From positions 310,001-374,000 of the forward strand of contig OZ025663.1 in NCBI GenBank assembly GCA_964019335.1: DNA of 64,000 nt, given 5' to 3'. The stretch's first letter is position 1. Each line of letters begins with the position of its first letter. Shown piece after piece: positions 17,557 to 49,323 of the stretch. The position numbers and the translations under genes are program-made. The DNA is from Diplonema japonicum (Eukaryota > Protista > Euglenozoa: Diplonemea). Below the pieces are notes generated by a model. The model saw only the letters and a list, made by a program, of their open reading frames with translations. It ran no database searches and was not told where the DNA came from.

Positions 17557-17647
17557 CCACTTCACTTCCGCTCGGACTTTGTTGCAATAATCTGTGAAAA
17601 GAAAGGAAAATCCTGTATTGGTGCCGAGAATTAGAACTAAGTTGTGA

Positions 17648-17688
<41 letters not shown>

Positions 17689-18717
17689 ACCATCTATATT
17701 TTGTTTTGAGAACAAAAAAAAAAAAAAAAAAAAAAGAAAAAAACAGATCCCTGTTCCCTTTATCTGGGTGGCAGGTTTGTGCAAAAAGAAAAAGAAAAAG
17801 AAAAGAAAACGAAGGGGAAAAAACAAAATAAGCGATACCATAACGAATAGTATCCCGGAAAAGGAAAAAAAAAAAAAAACCCTCTCTTTCCCTCCACCAC
17901 TAAAACCCCCTTCATATGAAAGAAGTATCCTTCTACTATTTGTTTTCCCTGCCCTCCTCTCTGTTCTGCCTCACGCCGCCCCCTTTCCCCGTGTCTCCTG
18001 GGGTGACCCGGATGAAAAATCTTTTTTTTATAGACACTAGAAAGTGCAAGGCAGCCAATCTGTCTGCGAGCTTTCCTCCCCCCCCCCCCCCCCCCTTCTC
18101 TCTCTCTCTCTCTCTCTTTTCTTCACTTTTCTTTTCGAATACCCAACAAAGATAGGGGGAAGGGGGAAAAGAAAAAGATGGGCCTTATCGACATTGAGAA
18201 GCAGCTCGCCTTCTACGGGGAGTACCACGCGAACCCCATGAACCAGTGGGTGCACATCATCTTTGTTCCGCCCATCTTGTGGACGGCGATGGTGTTCGTG
18301 GAGTGCGCTGAGCTTGAGGCCTTCGGAGTTCCGGGCTCTTGGTACGTCGCTGCTGTGTACGGGATCTTCTACATGTTGATGGACTTCGTTCCTGGGTTCG
18401 TGTGTTCTGGGATCCTGGCAGCGATGGCTGCGACGAGCGTGATGTTCGCAGAGCAGGAGAACGCCTTGAACATCGCCATCGGTGTGCACATCCTGTCGTG
18501 GGTGGTGCAGGTCGGTCTCGGGCATGGTGTCTTCGAGGGCAGGGCTCCCTCCCTCCTCGACTCCTTCTTCCAGTCCCTCATGCTGGCCCCCTTCTTCGTC
18601 TTCATGGAGTGCGTCTTCAAGCTCGGCTTCAGGAAGGAGCAGTTCGAGTCCTTGAACAACATCGTCGGGAAGCGCATCCTTGAGTACAGGAAACAGCAGG
18701 CGAAGAAGGCAAACTGA
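17557..18717 (+). repeat. ~1.16-kb duplicated block (upstream spacer + Mpo1 CDS), copy A; copy B at 27364-28523
   Basis: Near-identical sequence from CCACTTCACTTCCGCTCGG to the stop codon, including non-coding DNA. Differences are mostly homopolymer length. Confidence 0.92.
18178..18717 (+). CDS. MPO1: Mpo1/DUF962 family membrane protein (2-hydroxy fatty acid dioxygenase-like), copy 1
   Basis: QLAFYGEYHANPMNQWVHIIFVP...WVVQVGLGHGVFEGRAPSLLDSFFQSLMLAPFFVFME matches the DUF962 motifs YxxxHxxxxNxxxHxxxVP and QFxGHxxFExRxP. Confidence 0.92.
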   Translation: MGLIDIEKQLAFYGEYHANPMNQWVHIIFVPPILWTAMVFVECAELEAFGVPGSWYVAAVYGIFYMLMDFVPGFVCSGILAAMAATSVMFAEQENALNIAIGVHILSWVVQVGLGHGVFEGRAPSLLDSFFQSLMLAPFFVFMECVFKLGFRKEQFESLNNIVGKRILEYRKQQAKKAN

Positions 18718-18842
18718 CATTGACGTTAGCATTTAATCACAAAGAAAAAAGAAAAGAAAAAGAGGAAGAAGCCTTTGTCCTGCACCTCCAGAGAACGAAT
18801 AAGTGTACTTGGGTGATGGTGTTGGAGTGCCATCTTTTTTTT

Positions 18843-18882
18843 AGGGCGGCCCTTCATGAGGGGGTTTGTCCTGCACTTTGAG
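18843..18882. repeat. 40-nt dispersed element, copy 2
   Basis: 39/40 identical to 9811-9850, with the same ATC-polyT 5' context and polyT 3' context. Confidence 0.85.
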
Positions 18883-19373
18883 TTTTTTTTTTTTTTTTTT
18901 GAGGGTGAAACCTGTTCCATACGTGGGCATAGAGGGCCCAGCCTGAGTTGGACGAACAACCCATTTTGTACCATTCCTTTGGGAGTTTTTATGGTTTATT
19001 TTTTTTTGGGGGGGGGAAGGGCCTCCTTATTAGGTCTCAGGCAGTTTCTGAAAGACATTCATGTTATTGTTTCTCGTTGGACACAAAATTGCGGGTGTTT
19101 TTTCCTTCTTCTTCACTCTGGTGTCATTCTTACTGTGATTTATATCCTGGCAAGGGGCGAATCACGAGACATTTCTCGTGTGGGGTTTCTTCCTCTTTTC
19201 GGGATTGCGCCTCTCTTACCTTTTTTGCTAACGACAATATATATATTTTTTTGTTCGAACCAAAAAACAAAAAAAAAAAATTAATTTATGTGCTTTTGTT
19301 TTTGTTTACCCTGCACATAGCAGCCCACCCGCGAGGTTTCAAAAAAAAAAAAAAAAAAAAAAAAAAAAGGAAA

Positions 19374-19913
19374 ATGGGCCTTATCGATGTGGAACAGCAG
19401 CTCGCCTTCTACGGAGAGTACCACGCGAACCCCATGAACCAGTGGGTGCACATTGTGTTTGTGCCGCTCATTCTGTGGACCTCGATGGTGTTCGTGGAGT
19501 GCGCTGAGCTGGCAGCCTTTGGGGTGTCGGGCTCTTGGTACGTCGCTGCCGTGTACACTATCTTCTACGTGCTGATGGACCCTGTTATTGGAATCACCTA
19601 CTCTGCGATCCTGGCAGCGATGGCTGCGACGAGTGTGATGTTCGCAGAGCAGGAGAACGCCTTGAACATCGCCATCGGTGTGCACATTTTTTCCTGGGTG
19701 GTCCAGGTGTTCGTCGGGCATGGTGTCTTCGAGGGCAGGGCTCCCTCCCTCCTCGACTCCTTCTTCCAGTCCCTCATGCTGGCCCCCTTCTTCGTCTTCA
19801 TGGAGATCTTGTTCAAGCTCGGCTTCAGGAAGGAGCAGTTCGAGTCCTTGAACAACATCGTCGGGAAGCGCATCCTTGAGTACAGGAAACAGCAGGCGAA
19901 GAAGGCAAACTAA
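19374..19913 (+). CDS. MPO1: Mpo1/DUF962 family protein, diverged copy 2
   Basis: Same motifs and 179-aa length as copy 1. Substitutions are concentrated in the 5' two-thirds; the 3' end is near-identical. Confidence 0.92.
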   Translation: MGLIDVEQQLAFYGEYHANPMNQWVHIVFVPLILWTSMVFVECAELAAFGVSGSWYVAAVYTIFYVLMDPVIGITYSAILAAMAATSVMFAEQENALNIAIGVHIFSWVVQVFVGHGVFEGRAPSLLDSFFQSLMLAPFFVFMEILFKLGFRKEQFESLNNIVGKRILEYRKQQAKKAN

Positions 19914-20522
19914 AAAAAAAAAAAAAAAACGGAAAAACTACGGTGATCATCCGTGTGGGCTGCTTCGCCTTAGATGTCACTCTAGGCAGCGGTCTCCGCT
20001 CAGGGCCACACAGGATGCCTTCGTAGCCGCCTTTGATTTATATTTCTCATTAGTCTTCATGTGTGCCTCGATGGTTACAAGACCGCGAGGCACATCATAC
20101 AGCATCTCTCTTCTTGGTACCCTCTCTCAGGATTTGCCGTGTGTGCGCACCAATGAAACAGTACTGCACTCTTCTTCTTCTTGCAGCAGATCAAGGCAGC
20201 TTTAAGTTTGGTTTTGGAAAGATTTGAAAATAAATAAAAACTGGTTTTATTGCTCAAGTAATCAAAACAAAAATCTTTCGTAACTGCCAAAAAAAAATGT
20301 GTTGACATTTTAATCTGGACGAGCTCATATTAATCTAAATGAGTCAAACTTAAAGCTGCCCTGTTCCGTTGTTTGTACCCTTATTTTTTCTTCCTTTCTT
20401 TCTTTTTTATTTTAGTTTTCCTCCTTTTGTCTTTCTTTTCTTTTTTTCTTTTGATACCCACTCTCAAAATTTGTTTACAGAACACATACAACAAAAAAGA
20501 AGCGAGCAACGAAGGGCAGCCA

Positions 20523-23500
20523 ATGGCGACAACCAAAGAAGTTCGCCCTGCTTCAAGCATGTTTTCCACGACGATGCTCCAGTCATGGCTGGGGCAGTGG
20601 TCGACCTCGGACTCCGAGGAACAGTCGGTTTTTGAAGAAATGTGCGGGACCCACCCTGAGCTGTCGTGCCTCACGCCCGCGGAGCTTGTCCGTATGGCGG
20701 AGCTGATGAGAGGTGTGTGCTCCGAGGGGGATGTGAACCACGCGGAGGCCTCACGGATGATGAAGAGTTGGAAGGGTCTTAGGTCGCGCACCATGAACCG
20801 AAAGAGCATGTCTGCGGATTCGTCTGAGAATATAGAGGGGACGGGCAACGCCTCGATGGTGCCTAAACCCACCGAGTGCACCCTGGTGGTGGTGCCTGAG
20901 GTGACCGGCCAGGTGGCGAATACCGGGACCCCTTTGCTGCTCGAGTCTTGTGGGGTGGCGAGCGGGAAGTACGTTGAAGGCCTTCCCATGTACAAGAGGT
21001 GCGACGACGCTGTGCTTTCGCCGGTGGAGAACGGTTGGGCGATCCACTCCTCCCCCACCATCGATGCTGAGAGGCTCCTGACGAGTGTGGCTGAGCACGA
21101 GTCGTACCTGCAGCCGTGGGCCATGGGAGATTGGAGGGGGACCGACTTCAAGGGCGGGCTGCAGTCGACCCCGTGTTTGAACGCACGCGTGCAAATCGAC
21201 GGCGGGCACCTGAAGGCCGCCAAGTGGTCCGAAGAGTCGAAGAGCCGAGAAGACAACGTTCGGGTGGTGGCACCGGGTCCCCTGAAGCCCATGGACCTCA
21301 CCGTGAACAGGGCTTCCTTGTATGTGAAGTCTGTTGAGAAGGACTCCCTGTGGGAGTCTCTGGGCCTGATCAGGGGTACTCGTATCGTCCAGGTGACAAC
21401 CGAGAGAGTTATCAGAGGCACTGCTGACGAGCTTCAGAGGGCCTTGAAGGAAGCCTGCACCGACCACTTCAAGGGCTTTGCGCTCACCGTTCAGAGCCCC
21501 TGGATCTGGTTGGACGCTGCGGTCTCGCCTGACATCGATGTGTCCGAGAACGGGAGGAGCATCACCAAGAACAGGGGGGCGAAGCCGTCTATCGCTGTTT
21601 CGCCGTCTCCGGCTGGTGGGAAGGTCTGGAGGGTCCGTGTGAGTGGTGATGCGCTTGGGATGAGGGTCGGGTTGTGTGCTCGTGAAATGGACCACAAGCT
21701 GACCGAAGCGGACTCCGCCCCCAACAAGGACAGGGCCTACTGGTACATGCGACACGGCAGCCTCCGGACAGGTGGGAAGGACGTGGCGCCTACACGCGCC
21801 TTCAAGAGCGGTGACATCATCACTATCCGGCACAGTGGGAAGGCGAAGACTATCGAGTTCTTCCTGAACGGGCAGAAGCTGAGCGCCATGTTCACTGACG
21901 TGAAGGAACTGATGCTTCATCCTTGTGTGTACCTTTCTAAGAAAACCGCTACAATCAGCATCAGCCCTGGCGCTCCTGTCGAAGAGGTGCTTGAATGGAA
22001 CCCCAAGAAGCTCGGACCGCACACAAAGCTGTCTGCGGACCGCAGGACTGTGGAGAAGGCGGGCGATGCGGACAGCTCCGTGTCGACGGGCGCCATCGGT
22101 GGGAAGGTTATGGTGGGGCCGGGTCCCCATAAGTTTGCGATCAGGGTGAAGGGCAGGGGACCGTTGACCGATTCGTGCACCGTTGGTGTTGCTCCTCCCG
22201 GTGTGTTCTTGAACAAGGCCTACGAGCCGCAAACCAGCATGTTCGGTATGACAGTGAGGCCAGACGGCAACGTGTTTGGTCTGCAGTCGAGCACCATCCT
22301 GCACACGGGGCAGAGGTTGCAGGGGAGCGCGGCCATCTGGGAGTACGTGTTCACCTTCACCGTTGACCTTGGGGAGGGCACCATCATGGTGATGAGGGAC
22401 GACAGCCGTGTCGTGCACTCGTCCCTCATCCCCGATTTCCCGAAGGCGACGGGTCCCCTCGTGCCCTTCGTCACTCTCAGCAAGCCCGACATCCAGTGCA
22501 CGTTCGAACCATGCAAAGAGGAGGTGAAGCAAGGAGAGGGCAAAGTCTCCGTCATCGTTAAAGGGACCAACGTGGCGAAGAATGCTAAAAAGCCGGGGAC
22601 TCGCGGTGTCGCGGACGGCTTGTACCACAAATGGATCCCCACGTACAAGAGAGAGGACGGCGCCTACAGCATCTCATACTGGAACGGCAGGTGGTGCGTG
22701 AGCGACACCGCTGACAGGCCCGTCGCGTGGAGCTCCCCTTGCTCGCCGGATCAGCAGCTCGGAACGGAGTCCTTGAGGTGGACGAAGCTGGTGAACTACG
22801 AGCAGGTACCGAAGTACATCCGTCTGGTTGTCCCCGAGCAGCCTGGTGGGATCCTCGAGCTGCAGAAGGAGAAGAACGACGGGAGGGTCGTGTACGCCAA
22901 CCAAAGCCACAAGCTGATTTGGTCGGAGGTTCTGAAGAAGTGGATGGTGACGAAGCTGAAGCCCGAGAAGCGCACCGTTGCGTACTACATCTCTCCCTCG
23001 AAGGCGCTGTACCCGCATTGCTGTTCGTCCTGGTCGTGGGGCAACGGGACCACGTGGCTGCAGGACGACAGGATCCGCGTTGCAGCTGTTGATCAGACGC
23101 CCCTGAGGGAGGATTCGAAGCACCTCGTGTGGACGCAAAAGGAGTACGGTACCGGTTGGGAAGACGCGGCGGAGGTGAAGTTGAACCTGACGCCTTCGGC
23201 ACCGAACGTCGACATCGGGATCAGCATCAGGTTGAGCACCGCGGAACAGGGGACCGTGATCATGGACACGATGACGGCGGACGAACTGGCGGGGTGGCAC
23301 GTCGTGCGCAAGGCATCGGGCGCCTCCGTGAGGGCACCCGACCTTCGGAAAGCGCTGTTGGAGGTGTCGAGGAACGCGACCAGCGGGCTCTGCATGGACA
23401 CTGATTGGAAGACGACGGAGGAGGCCACAAAGATTGTGCGGGCGAACGCGGTGAGCCAGCTCCGCAGGATCGGTGACCTGTTGAGGAGTTTCAAGGGCGC

Positions 23501-26453
23501 GGAGGGGCACGCCGATCCCTGGGTCGCGAAGAACTTCACGAAGGGGATCCCGAGGTACGGACAGCTGCAGGCGAGGGTCATCGAGGGGGCCATTGTCGAC
23601 GTCAGCAGGCTGCCCATCTCCGACAGGAGGCTCTTCGGGTTGTCCTTGTTCGAGGGAGACACGAGGCCGTACCACGTGCTTGACTGCTACTCCGACACGC
23701 CGCCCGAGGACGTGACCTCTTTCATCATGCTTTACAAGATGGTGCAGAAGGGGAGGTTTGTTGTCTTCAACCTCCAGGAGCTCGGTCCCGACACCCAGAA
23801 CGAGATCCGTCTCGCGATCGACGCCGCGAAGAAGTCGACGGACAAGGAGCTGCTCGCCCTGGTGACCGACGGCGACGGGACCGACGAGACGATCGAGTTC
23901 GTGGACGCGCAGGCGTGCGACGTGAGGTGGAAGAAGTGGGCGATGGCGAGAGCGGCGAAGCTCAAGAAGTTCAAGACGATCACCTACTACGCGCAGAAGC
24001 CCGGTACCGGAAAGTCGTACACGATCAACCGGAACGTGAAGGAAGGAAAGTGGGGAGAGGGGGTGGAGGCCACGAGGTTGGACCTGGACTCGACGAAGGA
24101 AAGCATGGACCACGTGTGCTCGAGATTGATGGCTCCCTTGAGGGCGAAGGAAGGGCTGCTCATCATCCACGTCGGCCACGACACCAACCCTCGTGTGGTG
24201 AACCAGGTGTTGGACAACCTGATCTTCTTCGGGAGGGTCCAATCCACATCCGGATTGTCGGTCTCCATCAAGTCGCAGGGATGGCACCTCGTTGTCGAGT
24301 TCCAAGAGCCCCCCGCACCTGAGGTGGGCCACGTCGTAAACGACCCGTGGAGGAACGCTGAAGGCAAGAGCGAGATCACCCTGCTGTCGTGCGCCGACCT
24401 TGCTGAAGAGGGCGCCCTTGCAGAATATGACCTGAGTGAGTACCCGGGTGTCTTGGATGCCTTGAAGTACTTCCGCACCGTGTTCAGGGGCACAGATGCG
24501 AACTTGCCCACCGACGACATGCTGCTGGTTCGCATGCTTGCCATGGGGATCTGCAATGCTCCCAAGAACAGCGGCTCTGATGCGGACACTGTGGCGCACA
24601 ACGCCTTCCTCGAAGCTGCAAACAGCAGCACACCTCGTCTGCTTTCGCGTTCGATAAGATACTTGGTTAGGCAGTACAAGATCTTCCAACCAGAGCCCAA
24701 CGCTAAAGACATAACTCTCGCCAAACCTACAGAACAGAACAACTACAAGTTTGCGGCACACATCTTGATGCACGAAATGCACCACTTTGTCAACCCATCG
24801 CTTCCGGACCACTTCCACGCGATCCTCCAGAAAGATGATGTGAAGGATTACATGCAGCTCGCAGGAAACCCCAGCCCCGATCTTCAGGAAAGCATCAGGC
24901 TGCACGAAGAGGATTTGCATCAAAGGTTTCTTCTCTTCGTGTCGCACAAAGAAGCAGCAGAAGAGCAGCACAAGGCGAGACAGAAAGAGAAGGCGACAGC
25001 ACCCATGTACTGGCTGGCTGAGATCCTTTCCGAGGAGCTTGGGGTTGACAAGAAGCTGGTGATGACTGATCTGCGTGAGAACAACTGCGTTCTGACCCGT
25101 GACTTCTTGCAGAAACTCATCCAGCTGAATAACCGCATAAACCTCAACGATCCCCCTATCCTACAGGGGCCATCTGGTACTGGTAAGAGCAATGCAGTGA
25201 GAATATTGACAAGCCTGAGGCTGCTTCCGCTGCTTCCGGGTGTTAAGCAGTTCAATACACACAGCGACACTAACGGTTGTATGGTTTTCTACAAGTGGAC
25301 CAGGGTGAACCTAAGCTTGAGGAAGCTCTTCCCCAATGATAACTCCCGGGTGGAGGTTGATGGGCAGGATATGATATGGACGGCCATGCAAAAAATAAAT
25401 ACCAAAGAAAAGGCAAGAACTTGTTTTGCAGAACTTGTGGACTGTGACAACGTGGACGCCCTGAACTACGTGAGGGAGTGTGTGAACGACTTCTTGGGCC
25501 ATTACTACGAGGTTTGGAAGGAGGTGAAGGCCACGTCGTTCAGAACTGCCGTCGAAGTGCTCAAGAACGATGCTGAGCCCGGTGACCCAAAGAGGGCAGA
25601 GACCTTGAGCAGGTCCGTGCTTGTTGTTGCGGATACTCTCTCCAAAAACTGGAGTGGTTTGGCATCTGAGGTCGCAATCTGCTTGAACTCCGCCATTCGC
25701 TCTTCGAAGATGAAGGAGAAGGCCGGTAGGCTGTGCTATGAAAAGTTCATAAAGATTCTTGACTCCAATCCCTTGCACGATGCCTTTAAAACCTGGGCAC
25801 GTGAGGCTGTTCTGATTGTGAAGGAAAATCGAGAAGCCTTATGCCAGATTGTGAAGGATAAATTGAGGGAGATGCTGAGGAACTCACCGCTCCTGAACCC
25901 GTCGGCTGAGCTGATGGAGGCACTAGCAGACACCGGCACCAGTGATGACCCGACGACGGGCGAGAAGCTTGGTGAGATCATCGTGGAGATGTTGAAGCTG
26001 AAGAGAGAGAATGCCTCAGTCGACATTCTTATGCGCTACGACCTGACACCTGAGCTGCTGTTCGATCAGATGCGCCCTGTGCTGGAACGTGCACTGGAGT
26101 GCCCCTCAGTAAAATTTATGGTGATGATTGACGAGATGAACGCCACGAAGATGTTGGGTCTTGTGAAGCGGATTGTGGTGGACCGCTACTGGGACAGGTG
26201 GGAGGACGCACACCCTGAGTCAAGGGGGTACCTCCCTCCCAACGTTAACTTCGTTGGTGCCGTGAATCCCTCGAAGAAAGACGCCATCCTGGAGGGTACA
26301 GCCACAGAAGAATCTGACAAGACAAACGAGGGTGCAGAGAGTCTCGGGTTCGACGTGACCCCCATGCCGCCCTCGCTGATGGAGTACATTGTGCCGTGGA
26401 AGCAGCTAGAAGGACAGAGCTGTTGTTGGCGGCCGGTGGATCCAAAAACGTAA
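20523..26453 (+). CDS. Truncated RNF213-like paralogue (1976 aa): PDZ/2xSPRY/Trp-rich repeat array + first two AAA units only
   Basis: Uninterrupted ORF. 20568-24590 is essentially identical to 33411-37433 and 25921-26405 to 38806-39290. Walker A motifs AQKPGTGKS and LQGPSGTGKS, Walker B MVMIDEMN. Ends after micro-deletions near 26408-26425. Has its own polypyrimidine tract and AG (20391-20480). Confidence 0.8.
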   Translation: MATTKEVRPASSMFSTTMLQSWLGQWSTSDSEEQSVFEEMCGTHPELSCLTPAELVRMAELMRGVCSEGDVNHAEASRMMKSWKGLRSRTMNRKSMSADSSENIEGTGNASMVPKPTECTLVVVPEVTGQVANTGTPLLLESCGVASGKYVEGLPMYKRCDDAVLSPVENGWAIHSSPTIDAERLLTSVAEHESYLQPWAMGDWRGTDFKGGLQSTPCLNARVQIDGGHLKAAKWSEESKSREDNVRVVAPGPLKPMDLTVNRASLYVKSVEKDSLWESLGLIRGTRIVQVTTERVIRGTADELQRALKEACTDHFKGFALTVQSPWIWLDAAVSPDIDVSENGRSITKNRGAKPSIAVSPSPAGGKVWRVRVSGDALGMRVGLCAREMDHKLTEADSAPNKDRAYWYMRHGSLRTGGKDVAPTRAFKSGDIITIRHSGKAKTIEFFLNGQKLSAMFTDVKELMLHPCVYLSKKTATISISPGAPVEEVLEWNPKKLGPHTKLSADRRTVEKAGDADSSVSTGAIGGKVMVGPGPHKFAIRVKGRGPLTDSCTVGVAPPGVFLNKAYEPQTSMFGMTVRPDGNVFGLQSSTILHTGQRLQGSAAIWEYVFTFTVDLGEGTIMVMRDDSRVVHSSLIPDFPKATGPLVPFVTLSKPDIQCTFEPCKEEVKQGEGKVSVIVKGTNVAKNAKKPGTRGVADGLYHKWIPTYKREDGAYSISYWNGRWCVSDTADRPVAWSSPCSPDQQLGTESLRWTKLVNYEQVPKYIRLVVPEQPGGILELQKEKNDGRVVYANQSHKLIWSEVLKKWMVTKLKPEKRTVAYYISPSKALYPHCCSSWSWGNGTTWLQDDRIRVAAVDQTPLREDSKHLVWTQKEYGTGWEDAAEVKLNLTPSAPNVDIGISIRLSTAEQGTVIMDTMTADELAGWHVVRKASGASVRAPDLRKALLEVSRNATSGLCMDTDWKTTEEATKIVRANAVSQLRRIGDLLRSFKGAEGHADPWVAKNFTKGIPRYGQLQARVIEGAIVDVSRLPISDRRLFGLSLFEGDTRPYHVLDCYSDTPPEDVTSFIMLYKMVQKGRFVVFNLQELGPDTQNEIRLAIDAAKKSTDKELLALVTDGDGTDETIEFVDAQACDVRWKKWAMARAAKLKKFKTITYYAQKPGTGKSYTINRNVKEGKWGEGVEATRLDLDSTKESMDHVCSRLMAPLRAKEGLLIIHVGHDTNPRVVNQVLDNLIFFGRVQSTSGLSVSIKSQGWHLVVEFQEPPAPEVGHVVNDPWRNAEGKSEITLLSCADLAEEGALAEYDLSEYPGVLDALKYFRTVFRGTDANLPTDDMLLVRMLAMGICNAPKNSGSDADTVAHNAFLEAANSSTPRLLSRSIRYLVRQYKIFQPEPNAKDITLAKPTEQNNYKFAAHILMHEMHHFVNPSLPDHFHAILQKDDVKDYMQLAGNPSPDLQESIRLHEEDLHQRFLLFVSHKEAAEEQHKARQKEKATAPMYWLAEILSEELGVDKKLVMTDLRENNCVLTRDFLQKLIQLNNRINLNDPPILQGPSGTGKSNAVRILTSLRLLPLLPGVKQFNTHSDTNGCMVFYKWTRVNLSLRKLFPNDNSRVEVDGQDMIWTAMQKINTKEKARTCFAELVDCDNVDALNYVRECVNDFLGHYYEVWKEVKATSFRTAVEVLKNDAEPGDPKRAETLSRSVLVVADTLSKNWSGLASEVAICLNSAIRSSKMKEKAGRLCYEKFIKILDSNPLHDAFKTWAREAVLIVKENREALCQIVKDKLREMLRNSPLLNPSAELMEALADTGTSDDPTTGEKLGEIIVEMLKLKRENASVDILMRYDLTPELLFDQMRPVLERALECPSVKFMVMIDEMNATKMLGLVKRIVVDRYWDRWEDAHPESRGYLPPNVNFVGAVNPSKKDAILEGTATEESDKTNEGAESLGFDVTPMPPSLMEYIVPWKQLEGQSCCWRPVDPKT

Positions 26454-26879
26454 TCGCCTACTGTTTTTCTCACGTTCTTTCCCCCCATTTCTTTTGACCT
26501 ATGCAAGTAACCACCCCACTGAAATGATCTCTCTTTTTTTTTTTTTTTTCGCAAGAACGAGTCTTTGACTTGTCTAAACAAAAGGGGAACGTTCCAGGTT
26601 TTACCCGGCACGAACAAACAAAAAGATGACAGCACTAGACTGGGGTGATTTGGTTATAACGCCACGTTCTTTCTCTCTTTTCCCGTAGCAGCTCATGACA
26701 AAAGCTGGGCTCAGTCACACTACACTGAGCTTCCTTTATCTCATCTCTTTCCTTCTTTTTTATTTTTTCTCAGCTCGGCTGGTGAGCGCAAAAACGCATA
26801 CCAGGAGTAGTTTTTCATTTTGTCCCTTTTAGTGCTCTGGTCTCACATAGCGAAGATAGGAGAAGGGAGCAAAAAAGGA

Positions 26880-26924
26880 ATGGGCCTTATGACATCGAGA
26901 AGCAGCTCGCCTTAACCAGTGGGT
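26880..26924 (+). pseudogene. Deleted remnant of an Mpo1 5' end
   Basis: ATGGGCCTTAT-GACATCGAGAAGCAGCTCGCCTT//AACCAGTGGGT matches the Mpo1 start with a 1-nt deletion and a larger internal deletion. Confidence 0.8.
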
Positions 26925-27289
26925 TTTCCCCTCTGATCCTCCCTGGTAGCGTTTTTGTTTCAATATGAGCTCGTCTTGGAAAAAGTGTTAACAAATGACC
27001 CTCTTTTGCAACGGAAAACCCTCGGTGAATTTCTAAGTACAAAAGTAGTCCAACACCACTTTGTGTTCAGAATTGTGGTCTAAGTGTGTGCACCATATAG
27101 GTCACAATGTGCGCCGTTTGTTTCATTTCTAAAACGCGTGTGCAAATACATGCTTTTTAGAATGGTTTTTTTTAGTTTTTGGCATTCGGAAATTGTAAAT
27201 GACCCAGGCTCCATATTTCTTTTTGTTTCTTCAGTGAAAAGCGAGAAGAAATGGACGCAGATGGAAAAAAAATATAATATTTCTTTTTA

Positions 27290-27359: not shown

Positions 27360-27454
27360 TTGACCACTTCACTTCCGCTCGGACTTTGTTGCAATAATCT
27401 GTGAAAAGAAAGGAAAATCCTGTATTGGTGCCGAGAATTAGAACTAAGTTGTGA

Positions 27455-27494
<40 letters not shown>

Positions 27495-38100: not shown

Positions 38101-41100
38101 TCGATGCAAAAAACAGGAACAGGGTCGCCTTCACAGACCTTAGGAACACTTTCTACAAATGGGCCAAGAAGGACTCAAGCTTGAAGAAGCTCTTCCCCAA
38201 TGACGACTCTGACGTGCAGGTTGGTGGGCAGGGTGTGCTGTGGACGGCACAGACAATGAAAGCCACAAACAAGGCGAGCACGTGTCTTGCAAAACTTGTG
38301 GACCGTGACAACGTGGACGCCCTGGACTACGTGAGGGAGTGCGTAAACGACTTCTTGGGCCCTCTCATCAACGATGAGTATGCCAACCCTGACATTGCAA
38401 AGAAGAAGAGGGAACTCGCGTCGTTCAGAACTGCCATCCAAGTGCTCAAGAACGGTGCTGAGCCCGGTGACCCAAAGAGGGCAGAGACTTTGAGCAAGTC
38501 TGTGCTTGTTGTTGCGGATACTCTCTCGAAGGTCAGTGGTGGTTTCCTGACATCTGAGATCGTCACCTGCATGATGTCCGCCATTCGCTCTTCGAAGATG
38601 AAGGAGAAGGCCGGTAGGCTGTATGAAGAGTTCATAAAGGTTCTCGACGCTGATCCCTTGCACGATGCCTTTAAAACCTGGGCACGTGAGGCTGTTCTGG
38701 CTGTGAAGGGAAACAGCGAAACCCTGTGCCAGATTGTGAAGGAGAGATTCAGGGACGAGCTGAGGAACTCACCGCTCCTGAACCCGTCGGCTGAGCTGGT
38801 TCAGGCACTAGCAGACACCGGCACCAGTGATGACCCGACGACGGGCGAGAAGCTTGGTGAGATCATCGTGGAGATGTTGAAGCTGAAGAGAGAGAATGCC
38901 TCAGTCGACATTCTTATGCGCTACGACCTGACACCTGAGCTGCTGTTCGATCAGATGCGCCCTGTGCTGGAACGTGCACTGGAGTGCCCCTCAGTAAAAT
39001 TTATGGTGATGATTGACGAGATGAACGCCACGAAGATGTTGGGTCTTGTGAAGCGGATTGTGGTGGACCGCTACTGGGACAGGTGGGAGGACGCACACCC
39101 TGAGTCAAGGGGGTACCTCCCTCCCAACGTTAACTTCGTTGGTGCCGTGAATCCCTCGAAGAAAGACGCCATCCTGGAGGGTACAGCCACAGAAGAATCT
39201 GACAAGACAAACGAGGGTGCAGAGAGTCTCGGGTTCGACGTGACCCCCATGCCGCCCTCGCTGATGGAGTACATTGTGCCGTGGAAGCAGCTTGCAGAAG
39301 GACAGAGAGAGCTGTTCATTTCTCGTCTCATCGGGGCCAACAAGAATCTCTTCTCTGCAGACATCAGGAGAAGCCAGATCAAGGCACTGGACAGACTGCT
39401 GCTGAACGCGCATAGATTTGCACAGAAGAAGTGCCAAAACAAAAGATCAACAGTTTCGCAGCGTGATCTTCACAGAGCAATGAAGCTGTTCGACTTTTTC
39501 TACAAATATGAGAGGGAGTTCGTGTTCAGTAATGGAAGCCAATCTAGTGAAGTGTGGGAAAGGTCACTGTCCTCGATGCTTCTCGGCATTGCCGTTTCGT
39601 ACTACTTTAGATTTGCACCCGATGAGAGAGAGGAGCTGTCGACGATACTTACGGCGCTTCTTGTAGAGGAAGCCGGGAAGAACCCGAAGGAGGTCCGTGC
39701 ACTGCCTGATGGGGTAACCTTCGCAGACGTGGTGAAGAAGGCAGTGTCATTCTTCTGCCATAACAAGCACTTAAAGCTCCCCGAGGCTGTCTATGCGCAC
39801 CAGGGTCTGATGGAGAACCTGTTCGTGCAGATGGTCTGCTTCGACATCCGTCTTGCAGTGATCCTTGAAGGTGCGCCGGGTACATCGAAGACGCTTTCCA
39901 ACAATATCATCAGAGACAACATGACAGGGACAGGCTTGTTCTGGAAGGACTTCTGCCACATCTCGGACATCTGTAGGTACCAAGGGTCTGCACAGAGTAG
40001 CGCAGGCGAGATCAAGAGGAAGTGCCAGGAGGCATACACGAAGCAGAAAGAGAACGATGACGCAGGATCGAAAAACAAGCGTACTTTGCTGTTCGTGGAC
40101 GAAGCCGGTTTGGTGAAGGGTGAAACCGACGAGAGAAAGTGGGCCCTGAAGGTGCTGCACTACTACTTGGAGGGTGCGAACCTCTCGTCAGTGCTGATGA
40201 CAAACGCAACTCTTGACCCCGCCATCGGAAACAGATGCATTGTGGTGTACATGGCCAAGCCCGAGTCCAGCGAGCTCACAAACATGTGTGCAGGTATTCT
40301 GCACAAACATGGCCGGAAGGGTCTGTCCTATCTCGCCTCGAAAATCGTCCCTGTGTGCTGTGATGCCTTCCACAAGCTCGTCCCCCAGACGTCAGAGAAA
40401 GAGGAGCTTGTCGGCTACGACCCATCTGAGAAGTTCAGGTGGTGGTACGGTCTGAGAGATCTCTTCCACATGATGCGTTACATCAGGAGGTACCAGCCAA
40501 ACGACAAGAACCGTGACGAAAACTCCAAGATCGACGTGACGCCCGAGCTGGTGATGCGTGCCTTGGAGAGGAACTTCAACGGCCCTAGTGAGTTCTTCGA
40601 AGCCACAGTGAAAGTCTTTGGTGAGAAAATGGGAGCGATCGACCCAAACTTTTCTGCTGACAAACTGAGAGACGCAGCGAAGGGGAAGATCGACATCGTC
40701 CTGGACTCCATTCGGGACAACAACCGAGCGACAGAACAATCTGCTGGCAAGAACTTGAACGACATGTGGGTGAGGTTCAAGCTGCTGGTGGACACCACTG
40801 AGGATGGCTCGCTGCTGCAGCTCCTGAGGCAGAGTGATATCCCTCACTTCTGCGACCTAAGCGTACTGTCGCTGAGCGCGCTGTCTAAGGGTGACGAGCT
40901 TATGCCTGTCACTGTTGTGTCGCAGATTGCTGCTGCGATGGAAACCGGCAAGACAGTGTGGCTAACGAACACGAGAGAGATCGATGCCTGTCTGTTCGAC
41001 GTCTTCAACCAGAACTACGTTGTCGCGAGCAGCGGTGCGAATGAGGTGCTGCACTTCGTGGCCATCGCGATCGGTGCTGCTTTGGAGTACAAGCAGGTGC

Positions 41101-44100
41101 ACAAGGACTTCCAGTGTATTGTGCACGTTACGAAGAGAGAGCTGAAGGGGATGGGCCGAGTCCTTCCCTCTCCTTTCTTGAACCGTCTTGAGAAGTTCAC
41201 GATTTCCGTCGCTGATGTCGTGTCATACGTCGGGAGCCGCATGCTGAAGGAGGACGGGCTCAAGGCCGCACGTCTCAGGCAGAAGTTGGAGTCGTTCGAA
41301 AAGACGCTTTCCGTGCGCAACAGGTGTGTGTTCAGTGACAGCGAGAAAGAAACCTTCGACTCCATCCTGCTTGAGGCCATCCAGCAGAACAAGCTGAAGG
41401 ACCGCATCCGCATCAACTCTCGTATCACAGCTGACGACGCCTTGTCGAGCTTCGTCTTTGGGTCTAGCGAAGAGAATGCTCTGTGGAGGTCGCTGAGTTG
41501 CAGGCTGCTCCAAGTGTTACGCCCTGAGGGCATGATCCTTGCACAGAGGGTGCTGAAGGGTGCGCCTTCATACATGAGGGCTTACTTCAGGGATTTGTCG
41601 CCATGGAGTCTCGAGAACTACCTGATTGATCTGAGGAACAGACTGCAGCAGGCAAACGCGAAGAAGAACAAGCTCGGATGGACCAGGTCCGTGATCTACT
41701 CGCCTGCGAACGTAGATTTCCCGTCTCTCATTGAGGAGATCGACAGCGTGTCCCAAATCAGTGTTGACGGGCTGCTTGACTCAGAGAGAGGGCACGAAGA
41801 CCTTAAAGAAGAACTGTACAAGTTCTGCTTGGCACCAGACAAAACTATCTTCGTTGTTGTGATGAGCCCCGACTCTCTTGGGAAGCCCGAGTCCATGGAA
41901 GTTCGCCACATGCTCGACACCCCCCCCGAGTTGAAGGAAGGTCAGTCTATGCAGAACAAGGCTGTCTGCGTGCTGCACGCCTTCCATGCCACCACGTTGA
42001 CTGGCTCTACCAACTGCACGCCGCTCTTCGGGTGCGGGTGGGACCAGGTGTACATCGATGCTGCGGGTGAGCACGTGAGCCTTGACATCCTGCGCTACGT
42101 CGACCCGTCTATTTCGGGGAGGAGGGCACCTAAGCCCCTTCCAGAATGGAAGGACATGCTAGTGTTGCTCGACCAGGCAATGAACGGCCTGATGCAAGCA
42201 CAGAGCGAGGCTTCCACCAGGTGGGCACCCGTGGCAGCGAACGACCCTGCTGCGGTGCTTTACGACATCAAGAAGCCTTTCAGCGAGCAGGTGACTAAGG
42301 CGAGGAACCTCCTTGAAATTTGCCCTAAGGTTCGCAAGACTCTACTCAACCTGTACAGGGCCAGGCTCCCCACCGATCTAGAGCTTGTTGAGATGGCGAA
42401 GGATGTGGTGGCGTCCGAAAGGTCCCTCAGTCTTGCGCAGAGGCTTATCGATGAGGAGAACACCGCTCCGAGAGCGCTACTCACTTTCGCTCTGCGATTC
42501 TTGCTTGATGATCGTAATGCATCGGCGCTGCTTTCTTTCTCGAAGTCTGGCACAAAGGAAGACCTCGCTAAGAGTGACGACATAATTGCCCGCGCTCTCG
42601 AGGTTGCCGCCTCTGCAACGACCTTTGACCACTTGAGGCACATGAAGGTGAACACGCTCCCGCCTCTGTACGTGGGTGCGTCGATGCCCGCTCTGCCCGG
42701 TTCGTCTTCTTTGATGGAGACGCTCCCCATCCCTGCTGGCGCTTTTGATGTGGTTGCCGAAGCCATTGAGCTGCAGAAGAAGTACGAGGAGGGTCCGGTC
42801 GGCACCCTTGTTAAGATGGTGAACAAAGACGCCAGACTGGTCACTGCTTTCTTCCATGACAACATCAGGTCGCGTGTGAGGTACAATGACGAGAAGCTCG
42901 TGCGTCAGGTTGTGGAATGGACGTTGGAGCTCTCCCGCGGGATGTACAAGGTCAAGTTTGGCAACGAAGCAGAGAACGTGTGGAGGGTGCGTGCTCTGTG
43001 CTGCGTCGAGTCTGCAGCTATTGACGATTACATACTGGCGATGGTCCCACTTGCGGCGACAGGGACTCTTGACGGCGTGAACCCCGCTGCTGTGTCCATG
43101 AGCGACGTTGGCAACTCGCACGTGGCTCATGAGCTGTGCCCCAAACTTCTAATTGAGGCCCTTCCTAGAATGGCTGGGAGGCTTGGCCAGTTCCGTATGG
43201 CGTGCTCAAGCATGTTGCACAGGGTGACAAGCGAGTGGGTAGTAAACAGCAAGACCTTGCCGTGTTTGGCAGTGCTAGGTGGCCTGCTCTCAGACGAGGG
43301 CAAGCCCAAGGTCAAAGAGGCGATCACCTTCTCGAAGGCATGCATGGCGAAGAAGTCACTCGACTTCCCTACCTTAGAAGCAGCAATGACACGGGCATCT
43401 GTCCCGAAGGTATCCTTAGCCCTTGCTAAACTATACAAGAGCGGTGACGAAATCCCATTATTCCTGTGGAAACAACCCCTGAGCAGGGCAATGCATGCAC
43501 GAGTGATGTCTTTCATTATTACAGAGCCTGAAGCGGCGATGAAGACTAACCCTGCAGTAGCCGATGTGCTGCTGAAAGCTGCACTAGCGCAGATGAAGCT
43601 GAGGAAGGCAAGCAACGTGACGGAGGTCACTTTCTCACTCCCCACAGGCAAGACGGCCGAACCGAATCTTGTCAAGGAGCTGAACGCGTCTGTTTATCTT
43701 GCTTTGTACGATCTTCTGTACGACCGAACTGTTGGGATGAACACGGAGGCGCTTGACGCAAGCCTTGCAACCAAAATCGCCACGAAATACCTGGAACTTC
43801 TCGAAACTGAGAAGGCACTGAAGAAGTCGTACAGCTGCTCGCTCTTCATTGCTGTACACAAGAAAGCACTGGAAGTGGCGTTCCTGCAGGCCTTAGCATT
43901 CGTGTTCCGTCGTCCGCCCAGCGAGCAGAAAAAGACGTGGGAACCCGTATTGATGACTCAGGAAGCCGTCAAGAATGTGACGAAGGTGGCAAAGTTGCTG
44001 ATGGAGCCTACTGGCTTTGTGTGCCCTAAGAGAAGTAGTGACCTGGACAGGAAGTTGACGAAGAAACCGCCCAGTGCCGTGTGCGAGACCAACATGCTGA

Positions 44101-47100
44101 TGCTGCTTCATGCACTGGAGAACGGTGTCGGTACTGTGAGGGGCATGGGTACAAAGGCGATGCTGGAATACCTGCAGGACCAGGTGCCAGTATCTGACAA
44201 AGACAGCCATATTGGAGCGCTGGTGAAGGTCTGTGGTGCTGGTATGCAGCACAAGTGTCAGAACGCTGAGCCCATGGTTACCAGGCCCGGTGACCTTCCC
44301 TTCGTGTACAAGGTCGACGAGCCTCTTTACGAGCCGTTCATCACGCTGAGGCGTCAGCTCAACCTCAGCTCCGACGCAGGTATTGCTGACGGGAAGGAGG
44401 TGGATGAGATCAACACGATTCTTGAAAGCATTCTCAAAAAGCACAGCAAGACAGAGGTAAAACAAACACACAACAATACACATTACAACACAGGCCCGTC
44501 TTCTTTTGTTCTACACCTCTTTCAAGTGCTTCTTCGGTGAGAAGATCACCCACAAAGGTGCCCTCAAAATCGTGAAGAATGACAAGCTCAAGTCTCTGCT
44601 CGACCTTAACGAGAAACAGCTCTTGATCCTCCACATCGCGCTTGACCCGAAGCAGATCCCTGTGCCGTGTCCCGAGAGGGTATGTTTAACTTTGTATTCC
44701 AATAGTAGAACTACTACAGGTCAACGTTATGGATTCACTCTCTGAGGGGTTCAAGCAGGAATGGACTGAGATGGTGATCCCTGCCCTTGCTGTTGCTTGC
44801 TCCGATCCTACATCGCTGCTGTACTCGCTGTACATTGACATCGACGAGCAGAAGAACCTGTTCTTGCCAGGTGACAAGACAGGGAGTGCCATTACGCACG
44901 GTGGTGGCTACAAGCTTGACTGTGTGACCCAGCTTGACGAGAACGGGAACATCCATTCGTACGCTAGGGGGCAGCCGGTGATGAGCACGGGTTCTTGCTA
45001 CCTGTTGTGGGGTATCTTGTTCGGTGGTCTTGCATTGCAGCTGCTTTGGTTCCCTGGATGTCACTCGACGATCTGGAACTGGGTGGTGTCGTCGTCTATC
45101 CACAGCAGGACCTTCTCGTATCAGCATGGGACATCGAACTACCGCCACTTGGCCCAGCAGCTGACAGAGAGGTCCGTTGCGTACCATCTACACATGGGTG
45201 CGCACACGGGGCTGTCTGTTGACGAATCGCAGAGGATGTACGCGTTCCTGACCTACGAGTTCACGAAGTGCTCAACGCTGCAGAGGAAGAGGAACAACAC
45301 ACGTGAGGCAGCCATCCAGGTAGAGTCGAAGGTGGAAGATGTGTGGAAGTTGTACACTGGCAAGAAGAGGTCATTGCTGACCCGTCCTTCAGCTGATATG
45401 TGCTTCACCTTGAAAGCCCTCCATGACTGGGGTATCGACACCAAACCGCATGAGCTTCCCCGTTCAGGGAAGATCTTCAGCGACCTCGAGTGCCTGGGTG
45501 CGCAAGATGTGCCGAAGCTGCTGAACATGGCACTTCATGAACGTGAGAAGCTGAGCTTGTTGGCACCTCTGCTGACCGATCTGTACAGCTTCGCTTCGAG
45601 GGTGCACAGAATGCTCACCAACAGGCTGCCCACGAAGTACCAAGACCAAGGCGAGGAACTGCCCACTGCCTACCAGTCTGTGCTAGACCTGTTTAAGGAG
45701 TACACGCCTGTGTCGCAGTACGAAGTTGCCATTGAGCAGTTGGCCCGCATCAAGAACAAGTGGAACACCTTCAGGGTATGCAGTACCAGTTTTTATTATC
45801 ATATAACAGTCGAACGTGGGGCCCATAGACTTCGAATGCGAAGAAGGTGGCATCAACATCGTGATGGAGGAGCGGGAGGTACAGGTTGGTGCTGCTGGGT
45901 TGCCAGACACCCTTGACTTCTGGATCACGATGCCAGATGGGATTGACGCGCAGCACCGAAACCTTGTGAAGGCAGCTCTGCTGTCCCTTACGGAGAAGGT
46001 GTGTTATATTTCTTTTGTGTTTGTAGAACCCATCACAGTACAACCAATGCCAAGCCATCACTTCGCACTATACCAAAACGGAATGTGAAGACGAGATGGA
46101 GGCTGTCGACCCCATGCTACTCAACCCTTCAAAGCCCGATCTCATGCTCAGGGAACACAACGGCCTTGGTGAGGTTTGTAGGTCGCACGTAACCGATACT
46201 GAGGTATGCACACATCGCTATTTGCACGAAATTCACAGACCAACTGGACCGGCATCGAGACGGAGCTGTCGTTCGCCTCTGGGCTGCTGCTCCCGAAGCT
46301 ACTCTCCCCCGTCTTACCGGTATGCATGTTGCTTGTATCAGCTAATTTATTTTCAGGTCTTCCGCTTCTTAGACCCTGAGGACAACGTGCAGTCCCACGA
46401 AGTGCAGCAGCAGGCTGCTGACCTGGTATGCTCAACACACCCCATGAACACACAACAGTTGATGGTGCAGCCTGACCGTCACCTGAAGCCCCTGACGCAG
46501 AAGCAGGAGGAGAATCTGCGGACGAACGTGAAGCACTTCAACGAAGAGCAGAACATCTCCGTGCTGGTCGGCTTGATCAGCACTTTCAAGGCGAGGGACA
46601 CAACGCCGACCAGCAAGCTGTACCCAGAGGTCACAAAGCGATGGGGCCAGAAGGTGACGATGCCTCTGCGCCACAGCATGCTGTCGGATATTGTGGTCGA
46701 GCAAACGCGTGGCGTGCTAAATGTCTTCATGGACAAGCTGGAGCAGAACGATTGGTTGACAGCGCACATCGGCACCGATTTGCACATCCCCATCTCGAGC
46801 GAACTTCTTGCGCAGATCGACGAAAGGCTCGTTGTTCATTTGCGCAGCAACCCCCCCGACACAGTGCTCGAAGAGCTCGAGGAGATCCTCGACTCGGCCG
46901 GCAACTGCTGCTCGTCAGGTGAGTACCTCCGCGACACGAAGGCGTCCCTCTCGGAGTTGCTGTCTGCTGTCTTGCTCTTCGAAGACAACCACAACCCGTG
47001 CGACATCTTCGAAGGTGTGCTCATCGAGAACATCGTCCCCTTCATCAAGCTGGTGAGGAAGAAGCTGCGCAAGCTCCGCAGCCAAGCCTCCTCGAAGACA

Positions 47101-48057
47101 TGGAAGGAAGAAGGCGCCGAGCTCAGGGAAGTCCCGCACACCGTCGTGCTCAAGAAGGCACCGCTTGCCATCATGTACGACGACGACCTCACCATCACAT
47201 CGGTGGGTGATGGTGCTGGTGCGAGCGCAGGGTTGCAGGAGGGTATGAGAATCGTGGCGATTGGAGAGCACAGAGTGAGGGACAGGCAGGAGGCGGACGA
47301 CGCCTTGACGAAAATGCTTGATGTGTTTGAGATTTCTGTAGCGCTGGCGACACAGGAGCAGCACGGCGACGATCTTGACGTTGCGATGCACCATGCGGAC
47401 AAGCATGACGACGTGGGGTTGGACCGCGATAACTCATGGGCCTCATTCATCGAGCAGGCGAAGGACGAGGAAAAGCAGATGCACGACCTACCGAGGTGCC
47501 CATCGTCCTCTGGGATGCTAGGCCGCTCAGACTCCTTCTCGGGTACTGCATCTCACTCAAGACCATCACTGGGCGCGGGAGCAGTACCAGCAATGGAAAG
47601 ATCCGGATTGCCAAGATCCCAGTCCAATATTGAGGCCAAGGAGCTGGAACACAGAATGAAGCACGGCCTTGGCGAGAGGCAAGGATCCTCTACGGGTTTG
47701 GGAGAAAGACAGGATTCTTCTGCCTACGATGATGCCATGAGGAGACAGAAGCATGAAGTCGAGAGGCGTGAGGACCAGGAAGAACAAGAACTGTCAGAAC
47801 TCGAGCAGCAGAAGCGAGAAAACAAGCTTTTGAAAGACGAATTGACGAAAAAGAATAAGCAATGCGAGTCAGTGACCTCGCAGCTTACAAAAAGGGAGAA
47901 GAGCCTGAAGGATGTGGAGACTAAGCTCCACGAACAGGAATCTATCAATCAAACCCTTGCCACCACTGCACGTGCCCGGCAGGATGAGATCGAATCACAA
48001 AGAATAGCGGCACAGCGTGCTGCGAAAGAAAGCGAATCTTTGCCTGATTTTAAATAG
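29136..48057 (+). CDS. RNF213: Giant RNF213/mysterin-like AAA+ ATPase (about 6221 aa; introns 44457-44493, 44680-44719, 45776-45809, 45999-46038, 46204-46238, 46320-46356, 46426-46458)
   Basis: Ordered RNF213-type motifs: LQGPSGTGKS, MIDEMN, VSQRDLHR, ENLFVQMVC...LEGAPGTSKTLS, LLFVDEAGL, LKVLHYYLE, NATLDPAIGNR, YGLRDLF, LERNFNG, METGKTVWLTN...LFDVFNQNY, VHKDFQCIV, PSPFLNRLEK. Seven phase-0 GT-AG introns join track ORFs 29136, 44506, 44729, 45816 and 46096 into 18666 coding nt. C-terminal PDZ (about 47140-47345) and coiled coil. Confidence 0.88.
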
Positions 48058-48710
48058 AAACGTTTCAGTCGATTTTTTCCCCCCTTTTCTTTTTCTTTTT
48101 TATATTAACCCTATCCGCACACCTTTCCTTTCCCCCTTTTTTTGTTTTAAAAAAGATTTTTTTTTTTTTTCCCGCTCTTCGGCGAGTGGTTCAGTGGAAA
48201 AAAAAAAGAAGAAAGAAGAAAGAGAGAAAAAAAAGTTGCAAGAAGTGTGTCTATTTTAACTTTTTTTTTTTTATATCCCACTTATTAAAATTTCCCCGTA
48301 GCACGAACGTATGTACTACTGTTATGGACCGGTAAGGGTAGTCTAGCATTTTCTGGGCGGGCCGTTGCTAACCACTTCGTTCCTATCATAGTGAATTTTT
48401 TCTTTTGTTTGGCGCTTCTTTTCTTCTTCTCTTTAAACATAAATTTGCTCCGCCCCCCCCCCATTTTTTCTCTTTTATTCACTTAAATGTTTTTTCTCTC
48501 TCTTTTTTTTCTTTTCATCTCCCTCCCGTACATCTTGTGTATTGTGGGGGATTTAAAAAAAAAAAAAAAAAGAAAACGTCCTTCTGTTCCTCCCATTCTG
48601 GTTTTCTTTTTCTTTTTTTTTCTCTTCTTTTCTTTGCCCCTTCCGATTCTCCCCCAGTGGCGTTTTTTGCTTCAATATATTTTTTTTCCTCTCTTTGAAT
48701 TGCACGCGGG

Positions 48711-48744
<34 letters not shown>

Positions 48745-48783
48745 GAAACAAAACCAGTTAAAAAACACCACTTCAAAATAATA

Positions 48784-49323
48784 ATGGGCCTTATCGACAT
48801 TGAGAAGCAGCTCGCCTTCTACGGGGAGTACCACGCGAACCCCATGAACCAGTGGGTGCACATCATCTTTGTTCCGCCCATCTTGTGGACGGCGATGGTG
48901 TTCGTGGAGTGCGCTGAGCTTGAGGCCTTCGGAGTTCCGGGCTCTTGGTACGTCGCTGCTGTGTACGGGATCTTCTACATGTTGATGGACTTCGTTCCTG
49001 GGTTCGTGTGTTCTGGGATCCTGGCAGCGATGGCTGCGACGAGCGTGATGTTCGCAGAGCAGGAGAACGCCTTGAACATCGCCATCGGTGTGCACATCCT
49101 GTCGTGGGTGGTGCAGGTCGGTCTCGGGCATGGTGTCTTCGAGGGCAGGGCTCCCTCCCTCCTCGACTCCTTCTTCCAGTCCCTCATGCTGGCCCCCTTC
49201 TTCGTCTTCATGGAGTGCGTCTTCAAGCTCGGCTTCAGGAAGGAGCAGTTCGAGTCCTTGAACAACATCGTCGGGAAGCGCATCCTTGAGTACAGGAAAC
49301 AGCAGGCGAAGAAGGCAAACTAA
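48784..49323 (+). CDS. MPO1: Mpo1/DUF962 family protein, copy 4
   Basis: Protein identical to copy 1, but with different 5' and 3' flanks. Confidence 0.92.
   Translation: MGLIDIEKQLAFYGEYHANPMNQWVHIIFVPPILWTAMVFVECAELEAFGVPGSWYVAAVYGIFYMLMDFVPGFVCSGILAAMAATSVMFAEQENALNIAIGVHILSWVVQVGLGHGVFEGRAPSLLDSFFQSLMLAPFFVFMECVFKLGFRKEQFESLNNIVGKRILEYRKQQAKKAN

Follow-up and report, generated by a model that had tools for sequence, protein, structure and literature searches.

The stretch analysed here, referred to as the window, is 64 kb of chromosome piece C16 of the diplonemid Diplonema japonicum (positions 310001–374000), and positions 17557–49323 of it hold a locus in which small genes of the Mpo1 family are interleaved with two copies, one full-length and one truncated, of a giant gene related to animal RNF213. 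The order along the locus is Mpo1-A, Mpo1-B, the truncated RNF213-like gene, two Mpo1 5′ stubs, Mpo1-C, the full RNF213-like gene and Mpo1-D. An earlier note on this DNA (the original prediction) had proposed this gene order and had pointed out that an Mpo1 gene lies on both sides of each RNF213-like copy; our comparison of open reading frames (ORFs), profile matches and self-alignments of the window bears out both statements (order A-B / C / D). All window ORFs with a family match lie on the + strand, and the genes of the locus are as follows:

18178–18717, + strand: Mpo1-A, PF06127 match (E 1.8e-16), protein 100% identical to that of Mpo1-D
19374–19913, + strand: Mpo1-B, an older, more diverged copy with about 89% nucleotide identity to A, C and D
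20523–26453, + strand: truncated RNF213-like paralogue, containing a SPRY domain and ending inside AAA3
27984–28523, + strand: Mpo1-C, PF06127 match, spliced-leader addition at 27961, high-depth contig on its own 3′ untranslated region (UTR) in the RNA-like run X6
29136–48057, + strand: full RNF213-like gene of 6221 amino acids (aa), with exon 1 at 29136–44456 followed by at least six short introns, exon 3 at 44720–45775, and SPRY, AAA3 and AAA4 domains
48784–49323, + strand: Mpo1-D, PF06127 match (E 2.8e-15)

The small genes do belong to the Mpo1 family, as had been supposed: each of the four copies matches PF06127 over the whole profile with 56.7–61.5 bits against a Pfam cut-off of 24 (E about 1.8e-16 to 2.8e-15). 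Their coding sequence comprises 179 aa starting with MGLID, the longer ORFs including a pyrimidine-rich 5′ leader. The proteins of Mpo1-A, Mpo1-C and Mpo1-D are 99–100% identical, and that of Mpo1-B is 88–89% identical to the others. Aligned with diplonemid and fungal homologues, the proteins show five invariant residues, H17, H26, H116, E120 and E144, which all four copies keep; in line with the yeast work, these are the expected Fe2+ ligands. Yeast Mpo1 is a Fe2+-dependent 2-hydroxy fatty-acid dioxygenase. The Diplonema proteins resemble it (YGL010W, DUF962/PF06127) in the full-length profile match and in size, and they share the invariant His and Glu positions with the fungal homologues. 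However, identity to the fungal members is just 31–42%, and here there are four tandemly dispersed copies, whose enzyme activity is predicted.

Euglenozoan genes are organised in polycistronic one-strand units whose mRNAs are trans-spliced, and gene neighbourhood has little regulatory meaning there; the neighbourhood of Mpo1 and the giant therefore says little about their regulation. At the ends of contigs from the RNA-like run X6 we found the diplonemid-type spliced leader CTACAGTTTCTGTACTTTATTG, joined to the locus at 27321 and 27961. Proteins encoded in the block have 99–100% identical counterparts among the D. japonicum transcripts of EukProt, and Mpo1-B is expressed, since the transcript protein P0001 is 98.9% identical to it. 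Transcription of Mpo1-C, of the full giant and of the core of the truncated copy is likewise observed directly. An Rfam scan of 16.5–50.8 kb gave a sub-threshold histone stem-loop as its sole match.

The structure of the full giant was obtained by searching its exons one at a time, with the transcript-derived database protein P0084 (6221 aa) as the spliced reference. P0084 is 99.9% identical to the giant over exon 1 and defines GT-AG introns at 44457–44493, 44680–44719, 45776–45809 and 45999–46038, with at least two more near 46200–46400; mapped to the genome, it places the stop codon at 48055–48057. Mpo1-D is therefore the next gene downstream, where the original prediction had put it. Three other gene models were rejected. 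An end of the full gene at 44540 (ORF 29136–44540, 5134 aa) is ruled out by P0084, as the introns carry the frame on to 48057. An intronless gene in the trypanosomatid style is ruled out by the GT-AG introns that restore the frame, which P0084 confirms. Finally, orf395 and orf653 are not genes of their own before Mpo1-D: both lie within P0084, and their homologues lie within one continuous ORF in the paralogues on C18 and C60, which are collinear with the giant and continuous where it is split. All introns of this 18.9-kb gene are short (34–40 nucleotides (nt), GT-AG, phase 0) and fall within its last 3.6 kb, and in the C18 and C60 paralogues the ORF runs uninterrupted across the first of the intron positions.

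Animal RNF213 (mysterin) is a giant AAA+/E3 ubiquitin ligase that acts on lipid A and lipid droplets. The assignment of the Diplonema giants to its relatives, made in the original prediction, holds on two grounds, a sequence match in the AAA core and a fold match in the E3 module. In a phmmer search against the PDB sequences, RNF213 entries alone match (E 1.5e-25), with residues 765–1586 of the C-terminal piece of the giant aligned to mouse RNF213 1893–2674 (about 820 residues), and the Walker A (GPSGTGKS, GAPGTSKT) and Walker B (IDEMN, VDEAG) motifs of AAA3 and AAA4 are in register with those of RNF213. AAA2–4 is the sole AAA region detectable from the sequence of the giant. The E3 module was detected by structure comparison alone: neither a three-sequence profile of the C-terminal part against the PDB nor a search of the ESM Atlas gave a match. 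Exon 3 was modelled with AlphaFold from an alignment of 16 sequences, giving a mean predicted local distance difference test (pLDDT) score of 78.3; Foldseek with this model returns RNF213 at ranks 1–7 (best E 3.6e-3), and VIA-align superposes it on human RNF213 4432–4701 with Z 15.3 and a root-mean-square deviation of 3.7 Å over 189 residues, the next entry having Z 5.3. The part that superposes on the human E3 module and C-terminal domain (CTD) is exon-3 residues 1–223, so that one part of the module is compared. No RING-family Pfam match was found in any part of the giant at E <= 0.05 or 0.01, and the stretch equivalent to the RING is poorly conserved among diplonemids. Similarly, the giant gave no match to the RZ-finger profile PF20173 at E <= 0.05 or 0.01, whereas animal RNF213 sequences carry it; a region structurally equivalent to the RZ finger is present in the exon-3 model, with one invariant Cys (C68) and one non-invariant His at the alignment level. 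Because the AAA3–AAA4 sequence match is joined by the fold match of exon 3, the giant is an RNF213 relative in both its motor part and its predicted ligase part, with neither a RING nor an RZ-finger profile detected.

The giant and animal RNF213 are both single-chain giants (6221 aa here, 5207 aa in human) with their parts in the same order along the protein, the AAA core followed by the E3 module. Identity is only 22–25%, and unlike animal RNF213 the giant has an extra SPRY domain, present in the full and in the truncated copy (E 9e-11 in the latter), as well as about 280 residues inserted between the AAA3 Walker A and the remainder of AAA3. A further difference is that the diplonemid giants form a multigene family, with functions predicted from sequence and model. 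In the 62.5-Mb D. japonicum assembly, which served for all genome searches, RNF213-like loci also lie on C18, C60, C25, C69, C7 and possibly C104. The core is 52–68% identical to giants of Diplonema, Flectonema, Rhynchopus and Sulcionema, annotated merely as hypothetical proteins, and 25–29% identical to relatives in rotifers, a sponge and Balamuthia.

Two side observations concern this family. Among the 16 diplonemid sequences, conservation within the ligase part is highest over exon-3 residues 51–97 (44870–45010), with the consensus GDKTGS..HGGxYKFDCVTQLDE..G....GQ..S.G.CYLLW and an invariant Cys encoded at nt 44921–44923; this stretch lies where the model overlies the RZ-finger region of human RNF213. 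In Balamuthia mandrillaris, the distant AAA-core relative P0073 (5844 aa) combines this core with a PF00443 ubiquitin-specific protease and SAM domains and has no SPRY domain, which suggests recurrent links of the RNF213-type motor with ubiquitin chemistry outside animals.

The block has been recently rearranged, as had been suspected from its appearance: its copies are near-identical and its joints are filled with repeats and gene stubs. Self-alignment defines the left edge of the duplicated unit by a segment that we call U:

17557–18177, + strand: segment U, upstream of Mpo1-A, the left edge of the duplicated unit
27364–27983, + strand: segment U, second copy, upstream of Mpo1-C

Together with the Mpo1 genes that follow, 17557–18717 equals 27364–28523 at 99.7% over 1162 nt. 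These identities, together with the breakpoints, the repeat fragments and the copy number, are direct observations. The same similarity raises the question of an assembly artefact, in which a haplotypic or a collapsed or expanded repeat would have been misplaced in tandem, a case that the original prediction had named as one that would overturn it. D. japonicum is not haploid and six haplotypic duplications elsewhere were taken out by the curators (PMC13598402), and a 3.9-kb identical block might mislead an assembler. However, the YPF1604 assembly (62.30 Mb) was built with 102x HiFi plus Hi-C data, and the HiFi reads (7.93 Gb in 8.4e5 reads, mean about 9 kb) are longer than the identical block (PMC13598402). 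We also placed on 24400–29400 the contigs of four public runs, which come from three studies. In the DNA-like run X1, k-mer depth is 227 on the truncated-specific core, 227 on sequence specific to the 5′ end of the full gene, 439–450 on the shared block and 593–706 on Mpo1; the corresponding depths in the DNA-like run X2, from another study, are 17, 17, 28 and 45–56. These ratios of about 1:1:2:3 are the expectation for a correct assembly in which the insertion is not heterozygous, and they argue against an artefact. Copy-specific contigs of the truncated paralogue occur in all four runs (three studies), one contig bridges the 26419 breakpoint, and the truncated copy joins unique sequence at both ends; no contig across the whole 5-kb stretch 24400–29400 was found among those listed from the four runs. 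We consider a misassembly extremely improbable.

The joints of the block contain the following debris:

20245–20330, + strand: right-terminal 85 nt of a repeat resembling a miniature inverted-repeat transposable element (MITE), ending in the terminal inverted repeat and matching the end of L009:882–1906
26557–26654, + strand: fragment of a second dispersed repeat, a junction filler (269 first-look candidates, 46 scored matches)
26855–26914, + strand: Mpo1 stub 1, the initial 35 coding nt behind an A/C-type leader, one nt being deleted
26964–27268, + strand: left-terminal part (about 305 nt) of the same MITE-like element as at 20245–20330, starting at the terminal inverted repeat
27312–27360, + strand: Mpo1 stub 2, the initial 15 coding nt behind a D-type leader, joined directly to the beginning of segment U

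The two Mpo1 remnants of the original prediction thus exist, but they are small, being stubs of merely 35 and 15 coding nt. The MITE-like element is non-autonomous, about 1025 nt long (reference copy L009:882–1906) and bounded by 23-nt terminal inverted repeats (ATATGAGCTCGTCCGG...); its copies in the genome are put at between at least 40 and several hundred, with at least 40 at 85–92% identity and at least 177 first-look candidate matches. Over the second repeat (26557–26654), summed contig depth is 100–250x single copy in all four runs. On either side of the truncated giant lies a MITE half-copy whose true terminus (20330 and 26964, respectively) faces inward, which is the reverse of an insertion into one element. 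The spliced-leader acceptor of stub 2 is still in use, the leader being joined at 27321 in one RNA-like contig (X6). Downstream of this site, within 27321–27405, is a 19-codon ORF that opens with the first five Mpo1 codons, and the leader-bearing transcript is an isoform of Mpo1-C with a long leader or else is non-coding. Outside the block, the gene after Mpo1-D (49747–50691) encodes an alpha/beta hydrolase of the chlorophyllase family (PF07224, E 2.8e-22) whose N-terminus resembles a signal peptide, a further possible lipid or ester hydrolase near the locus.

In the truncated giant, positions 20568–26419 correspond to 33411–39307 of the full gene at 95.4% identity. The gene opens with a pyrimidine tract, an AG and an ATG at 20523, continues with 15 novel codons and then with residues 1426–3390 of the full protein, and closes with 14 novel codons before the stop; its ORF is open over 1976 codons. 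It stops inside AAA3 after the Walker B motif and lacks AAA4–6 and the E3 module. The copies are 100% identical over 20587–24539 and 25920–26405, and between these blocks lies a strongly diverged stretch:

24540–25917, + strand: diverged core of the truncated copy, pairing with 37383–38802 of the full gene, between 100% identical blocks

Within the core lies the conserved Walker A motif of AAA3, and between-species conservation dips over this region. It differs from the full gene at 227 of 1377 aligned nt, spread evenly over the codon positions (82/71/74) and creating no stop, with dS 0.17–0.33 and dN/dS 0.7–1.1 (about 0.95), and all seven of its indels are in frame. If substitutions were random, the probability of remaining stop-free would be 0.02 with half of the changes on an unconstrained copy and 0.0003 with all of them on it. 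Diplonemid orthologues and the C18 paralogue, used as outgroups, allowed 93 differences to be polarised: the truncated copy carries the derived state at 65 of them (about 70%) and the full copy at 28, and a further 41 differences were uninformative. A third copy as the donor of the diverged core is ruled out, as none was found in the genome. The core is transcribed, since at 135 of 152 diagnostic sites the Trinity isoform P0041 has the residue of the truncated copy before it changes to the full-gene type; it contains no novel residues.

These features could be taken as signs that the truncated copy is a maintained gene, serving as a decoy or regulator, or as a variant cassette trading a fast-evolving surface with the full-length sensor by gene conversion, a reading that is compatible with an origin by segmental duplication. 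The long open frame with its own pyrimidine tract, AG and ATG, the stop-free and in-frame divergence, the excess of derived changes, the transcribed core and its coincidence with the conservation dip are all consistent with maintenance. However, a once full-length functional tandem paralogue or allele that lost its ends only recently would leave the same pattern, and the product would be a protein without most of the AAA ring and the entire E3 module. Since P0041 is a Trinity chimera, the evidence of transcription reaches the core and not the novel ends, and a truncated-length transcript was not found in the protein collection in a search seeded by the first 500 residues only, and hence weak. 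We regard maintenance of the truncated copy as unlikely.

For the locus as a whole, we favour, at a probability of about 0.75, the reading that the block is a young, still-evolving segmental duplication and that the interleaving of Mpo1 and RNF213-like genes is its by-product, not a functional pairing. The competing proposal, put forward in the original prediction, is that the Mpo1 dioxygenase and the RNF213-like E3/AAA giant act jointly on lipids of microbes or of the host, selection having co-amplified them as a lipid-sensing and lipid-processing defence module. The two differ in whether the adjacency should recur, and the homology searches proposed in the original prediction for this purpose revealed no recurrence in D. 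japonicum or D. papillatum. A genome-wide PF06127 hidden Markov model (HMM) search returned the four cluster copies and one divergent paralogue on C92, and nothing more. Because the family is confined to this cluster and the C92 locus, the RNF213-like loci on C18, C60, C25, C69 and C7 have no Mpo1 neighbour. The C92 gene (C92:346515–346940; L015:5363–5974) is 17% identical to the cluster copies and keeps the invariant His and Glu positions, and around it no giant ORF lies within about 5 kb and no ORF in the fetched locus exceeds 658 aa. In D. papillatum, the closest Mpo1 protein, KAJ9461805, and the two closest RNF213-like proteins, KAJ9446521 and KAJ9462663, are encoded on three separate contigs (295,578, 102,889 and 308,410 nt). 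Full-text searches found no paper on RNF213 in euglenozoans or on RNF213 together with Mpo1.

Other observations point away from joint function as well. The copies are so similar that the arrangement is very young; its joints consist of repeat debris and not of clean units; and one of the two supposed partners is a fragment lacking AAA4–6 and the E3 module. By contig depth in the RNA-like run X6, the 3′ UTR of Mpo1-C (about 518) exceeds the giants (4–14) roughly 100-fold, a contig-level and weak measure that shows no sign of matched expression.

Some findings nevertheless weigh against a mere by-product and on the side of a module. All four close Mpo1 copies surround RNF213-like sequence, so that each giant copy has an Mpo1 flank, and all keep the invariant His and Glu; a chance placement of the four around RNF213-like sequence is plausible. 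Animal RNF213 is generally known to act on lipid A and lipid droplets. D. japonicum carries two bacterial endosymbionts (PMC13598402), and with intracellular bacteria in the host an antibacterial role of RNF213-type proteins is not far-fetched. Synteny outside D. japonicum was compared in one species, D. papillatum, at the contig level only. Finally, in a diplonemid assembly in the ENA, P0005 (Mpo1-like) and P0055 (RNF213-like) each lie on a contig of 2,032,063 nt, probably one and the same. Weighing both sides, we consider a functional module very unlikely.

The alternative held in reserve by the original prediction, that the Mpo1 copies are mere substrate for rearrangement, gives the best fit to the near-identical copies, the debris at the joints and the lack of recurrence. 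A model for the segmental duplication based on these data would comprise five steps, whose order we infer from the sequence. The small Mpo1 gene would first have been amplified in tandem, to at least six copies at one time, of which four are intact now and two survive as 5′ stubs. A unit reaching from segment U (17557 / 27364) into the neighbouring RNF213-like giant would then have been duplicated. Subsequently, non-homologous breaks may have taken both ends off one giant copy, leaving an internal piece of 5.9 kb that became joined to a new spliced-leader acceptor and ATG on the 5′ side and to a short new tail on the 3′ side, and the joints would have been filled with fragments of the two dispersed repeats and with Mpo1 5′ stubs. 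Gene conversion may now preserve identity over most of the two giants and among three of the Mpo1 genes; that the identical blocks are due to conversion and not to recency is likewise our reconstruction.

Recent segmental duplications that arise by non-allelic recombination or template-switch repair likewise have near-identical copies, breakpoints inside genes, junctions patched from nearby genes and transposon fragments, and mosaics of identical and diverged tracts. Here, in contrast to the known cases, the mechanism is deduced from the sequence only, and the inward-facing MITE termini around the truncated copy are unusual and unexplained.

A reading that joins several of these threads can be formulated: the expanded RNF213-type giants of diplonemids would be cell-autonomous sensors for intracellular bacteria, one of them would diversify at this locus, the transcribed, frame-preserved truncated copy would trade its alternative version of a fast-evolving AAA3 insertion with the full gene by conversion, and Mpo1 would process 2-hydroxy or other unusual fatty acids from the targeted membranes. 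We hold this combination to be highly improbable.

A pairing of Mpo1 with an RNF213-type protein, if true, would be a new kind of eukaryotic defence locus. Most likely, however, the pairing is an accident of a young duplication, and the claim of a defence locus should not be carried forward. The most interesting residue of the locus is the truncated copy, with its transcribed core, its preserved frame and a strongly diverged core of about 1.4 kb between identical flanks. To our knowledge, RNF213 has been studied almost solely in vertebrates. Diplonemids hold clear relatives of it that share both the AAA core and the fold of the E3 module, with at least five to seven giants per genome, and its two endosymbionts make D. 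japonicum tractable for asking what role is played by an RNF213-type enzyme in which neither a RING nor a canonical RZ finger is detected. Moreover, an expressed truncated copy with a diverged core is a natural experiment that can show where in the giant evolution is fastest, and both the protist RNF213 family and this truncated copy are worth a note of their own.

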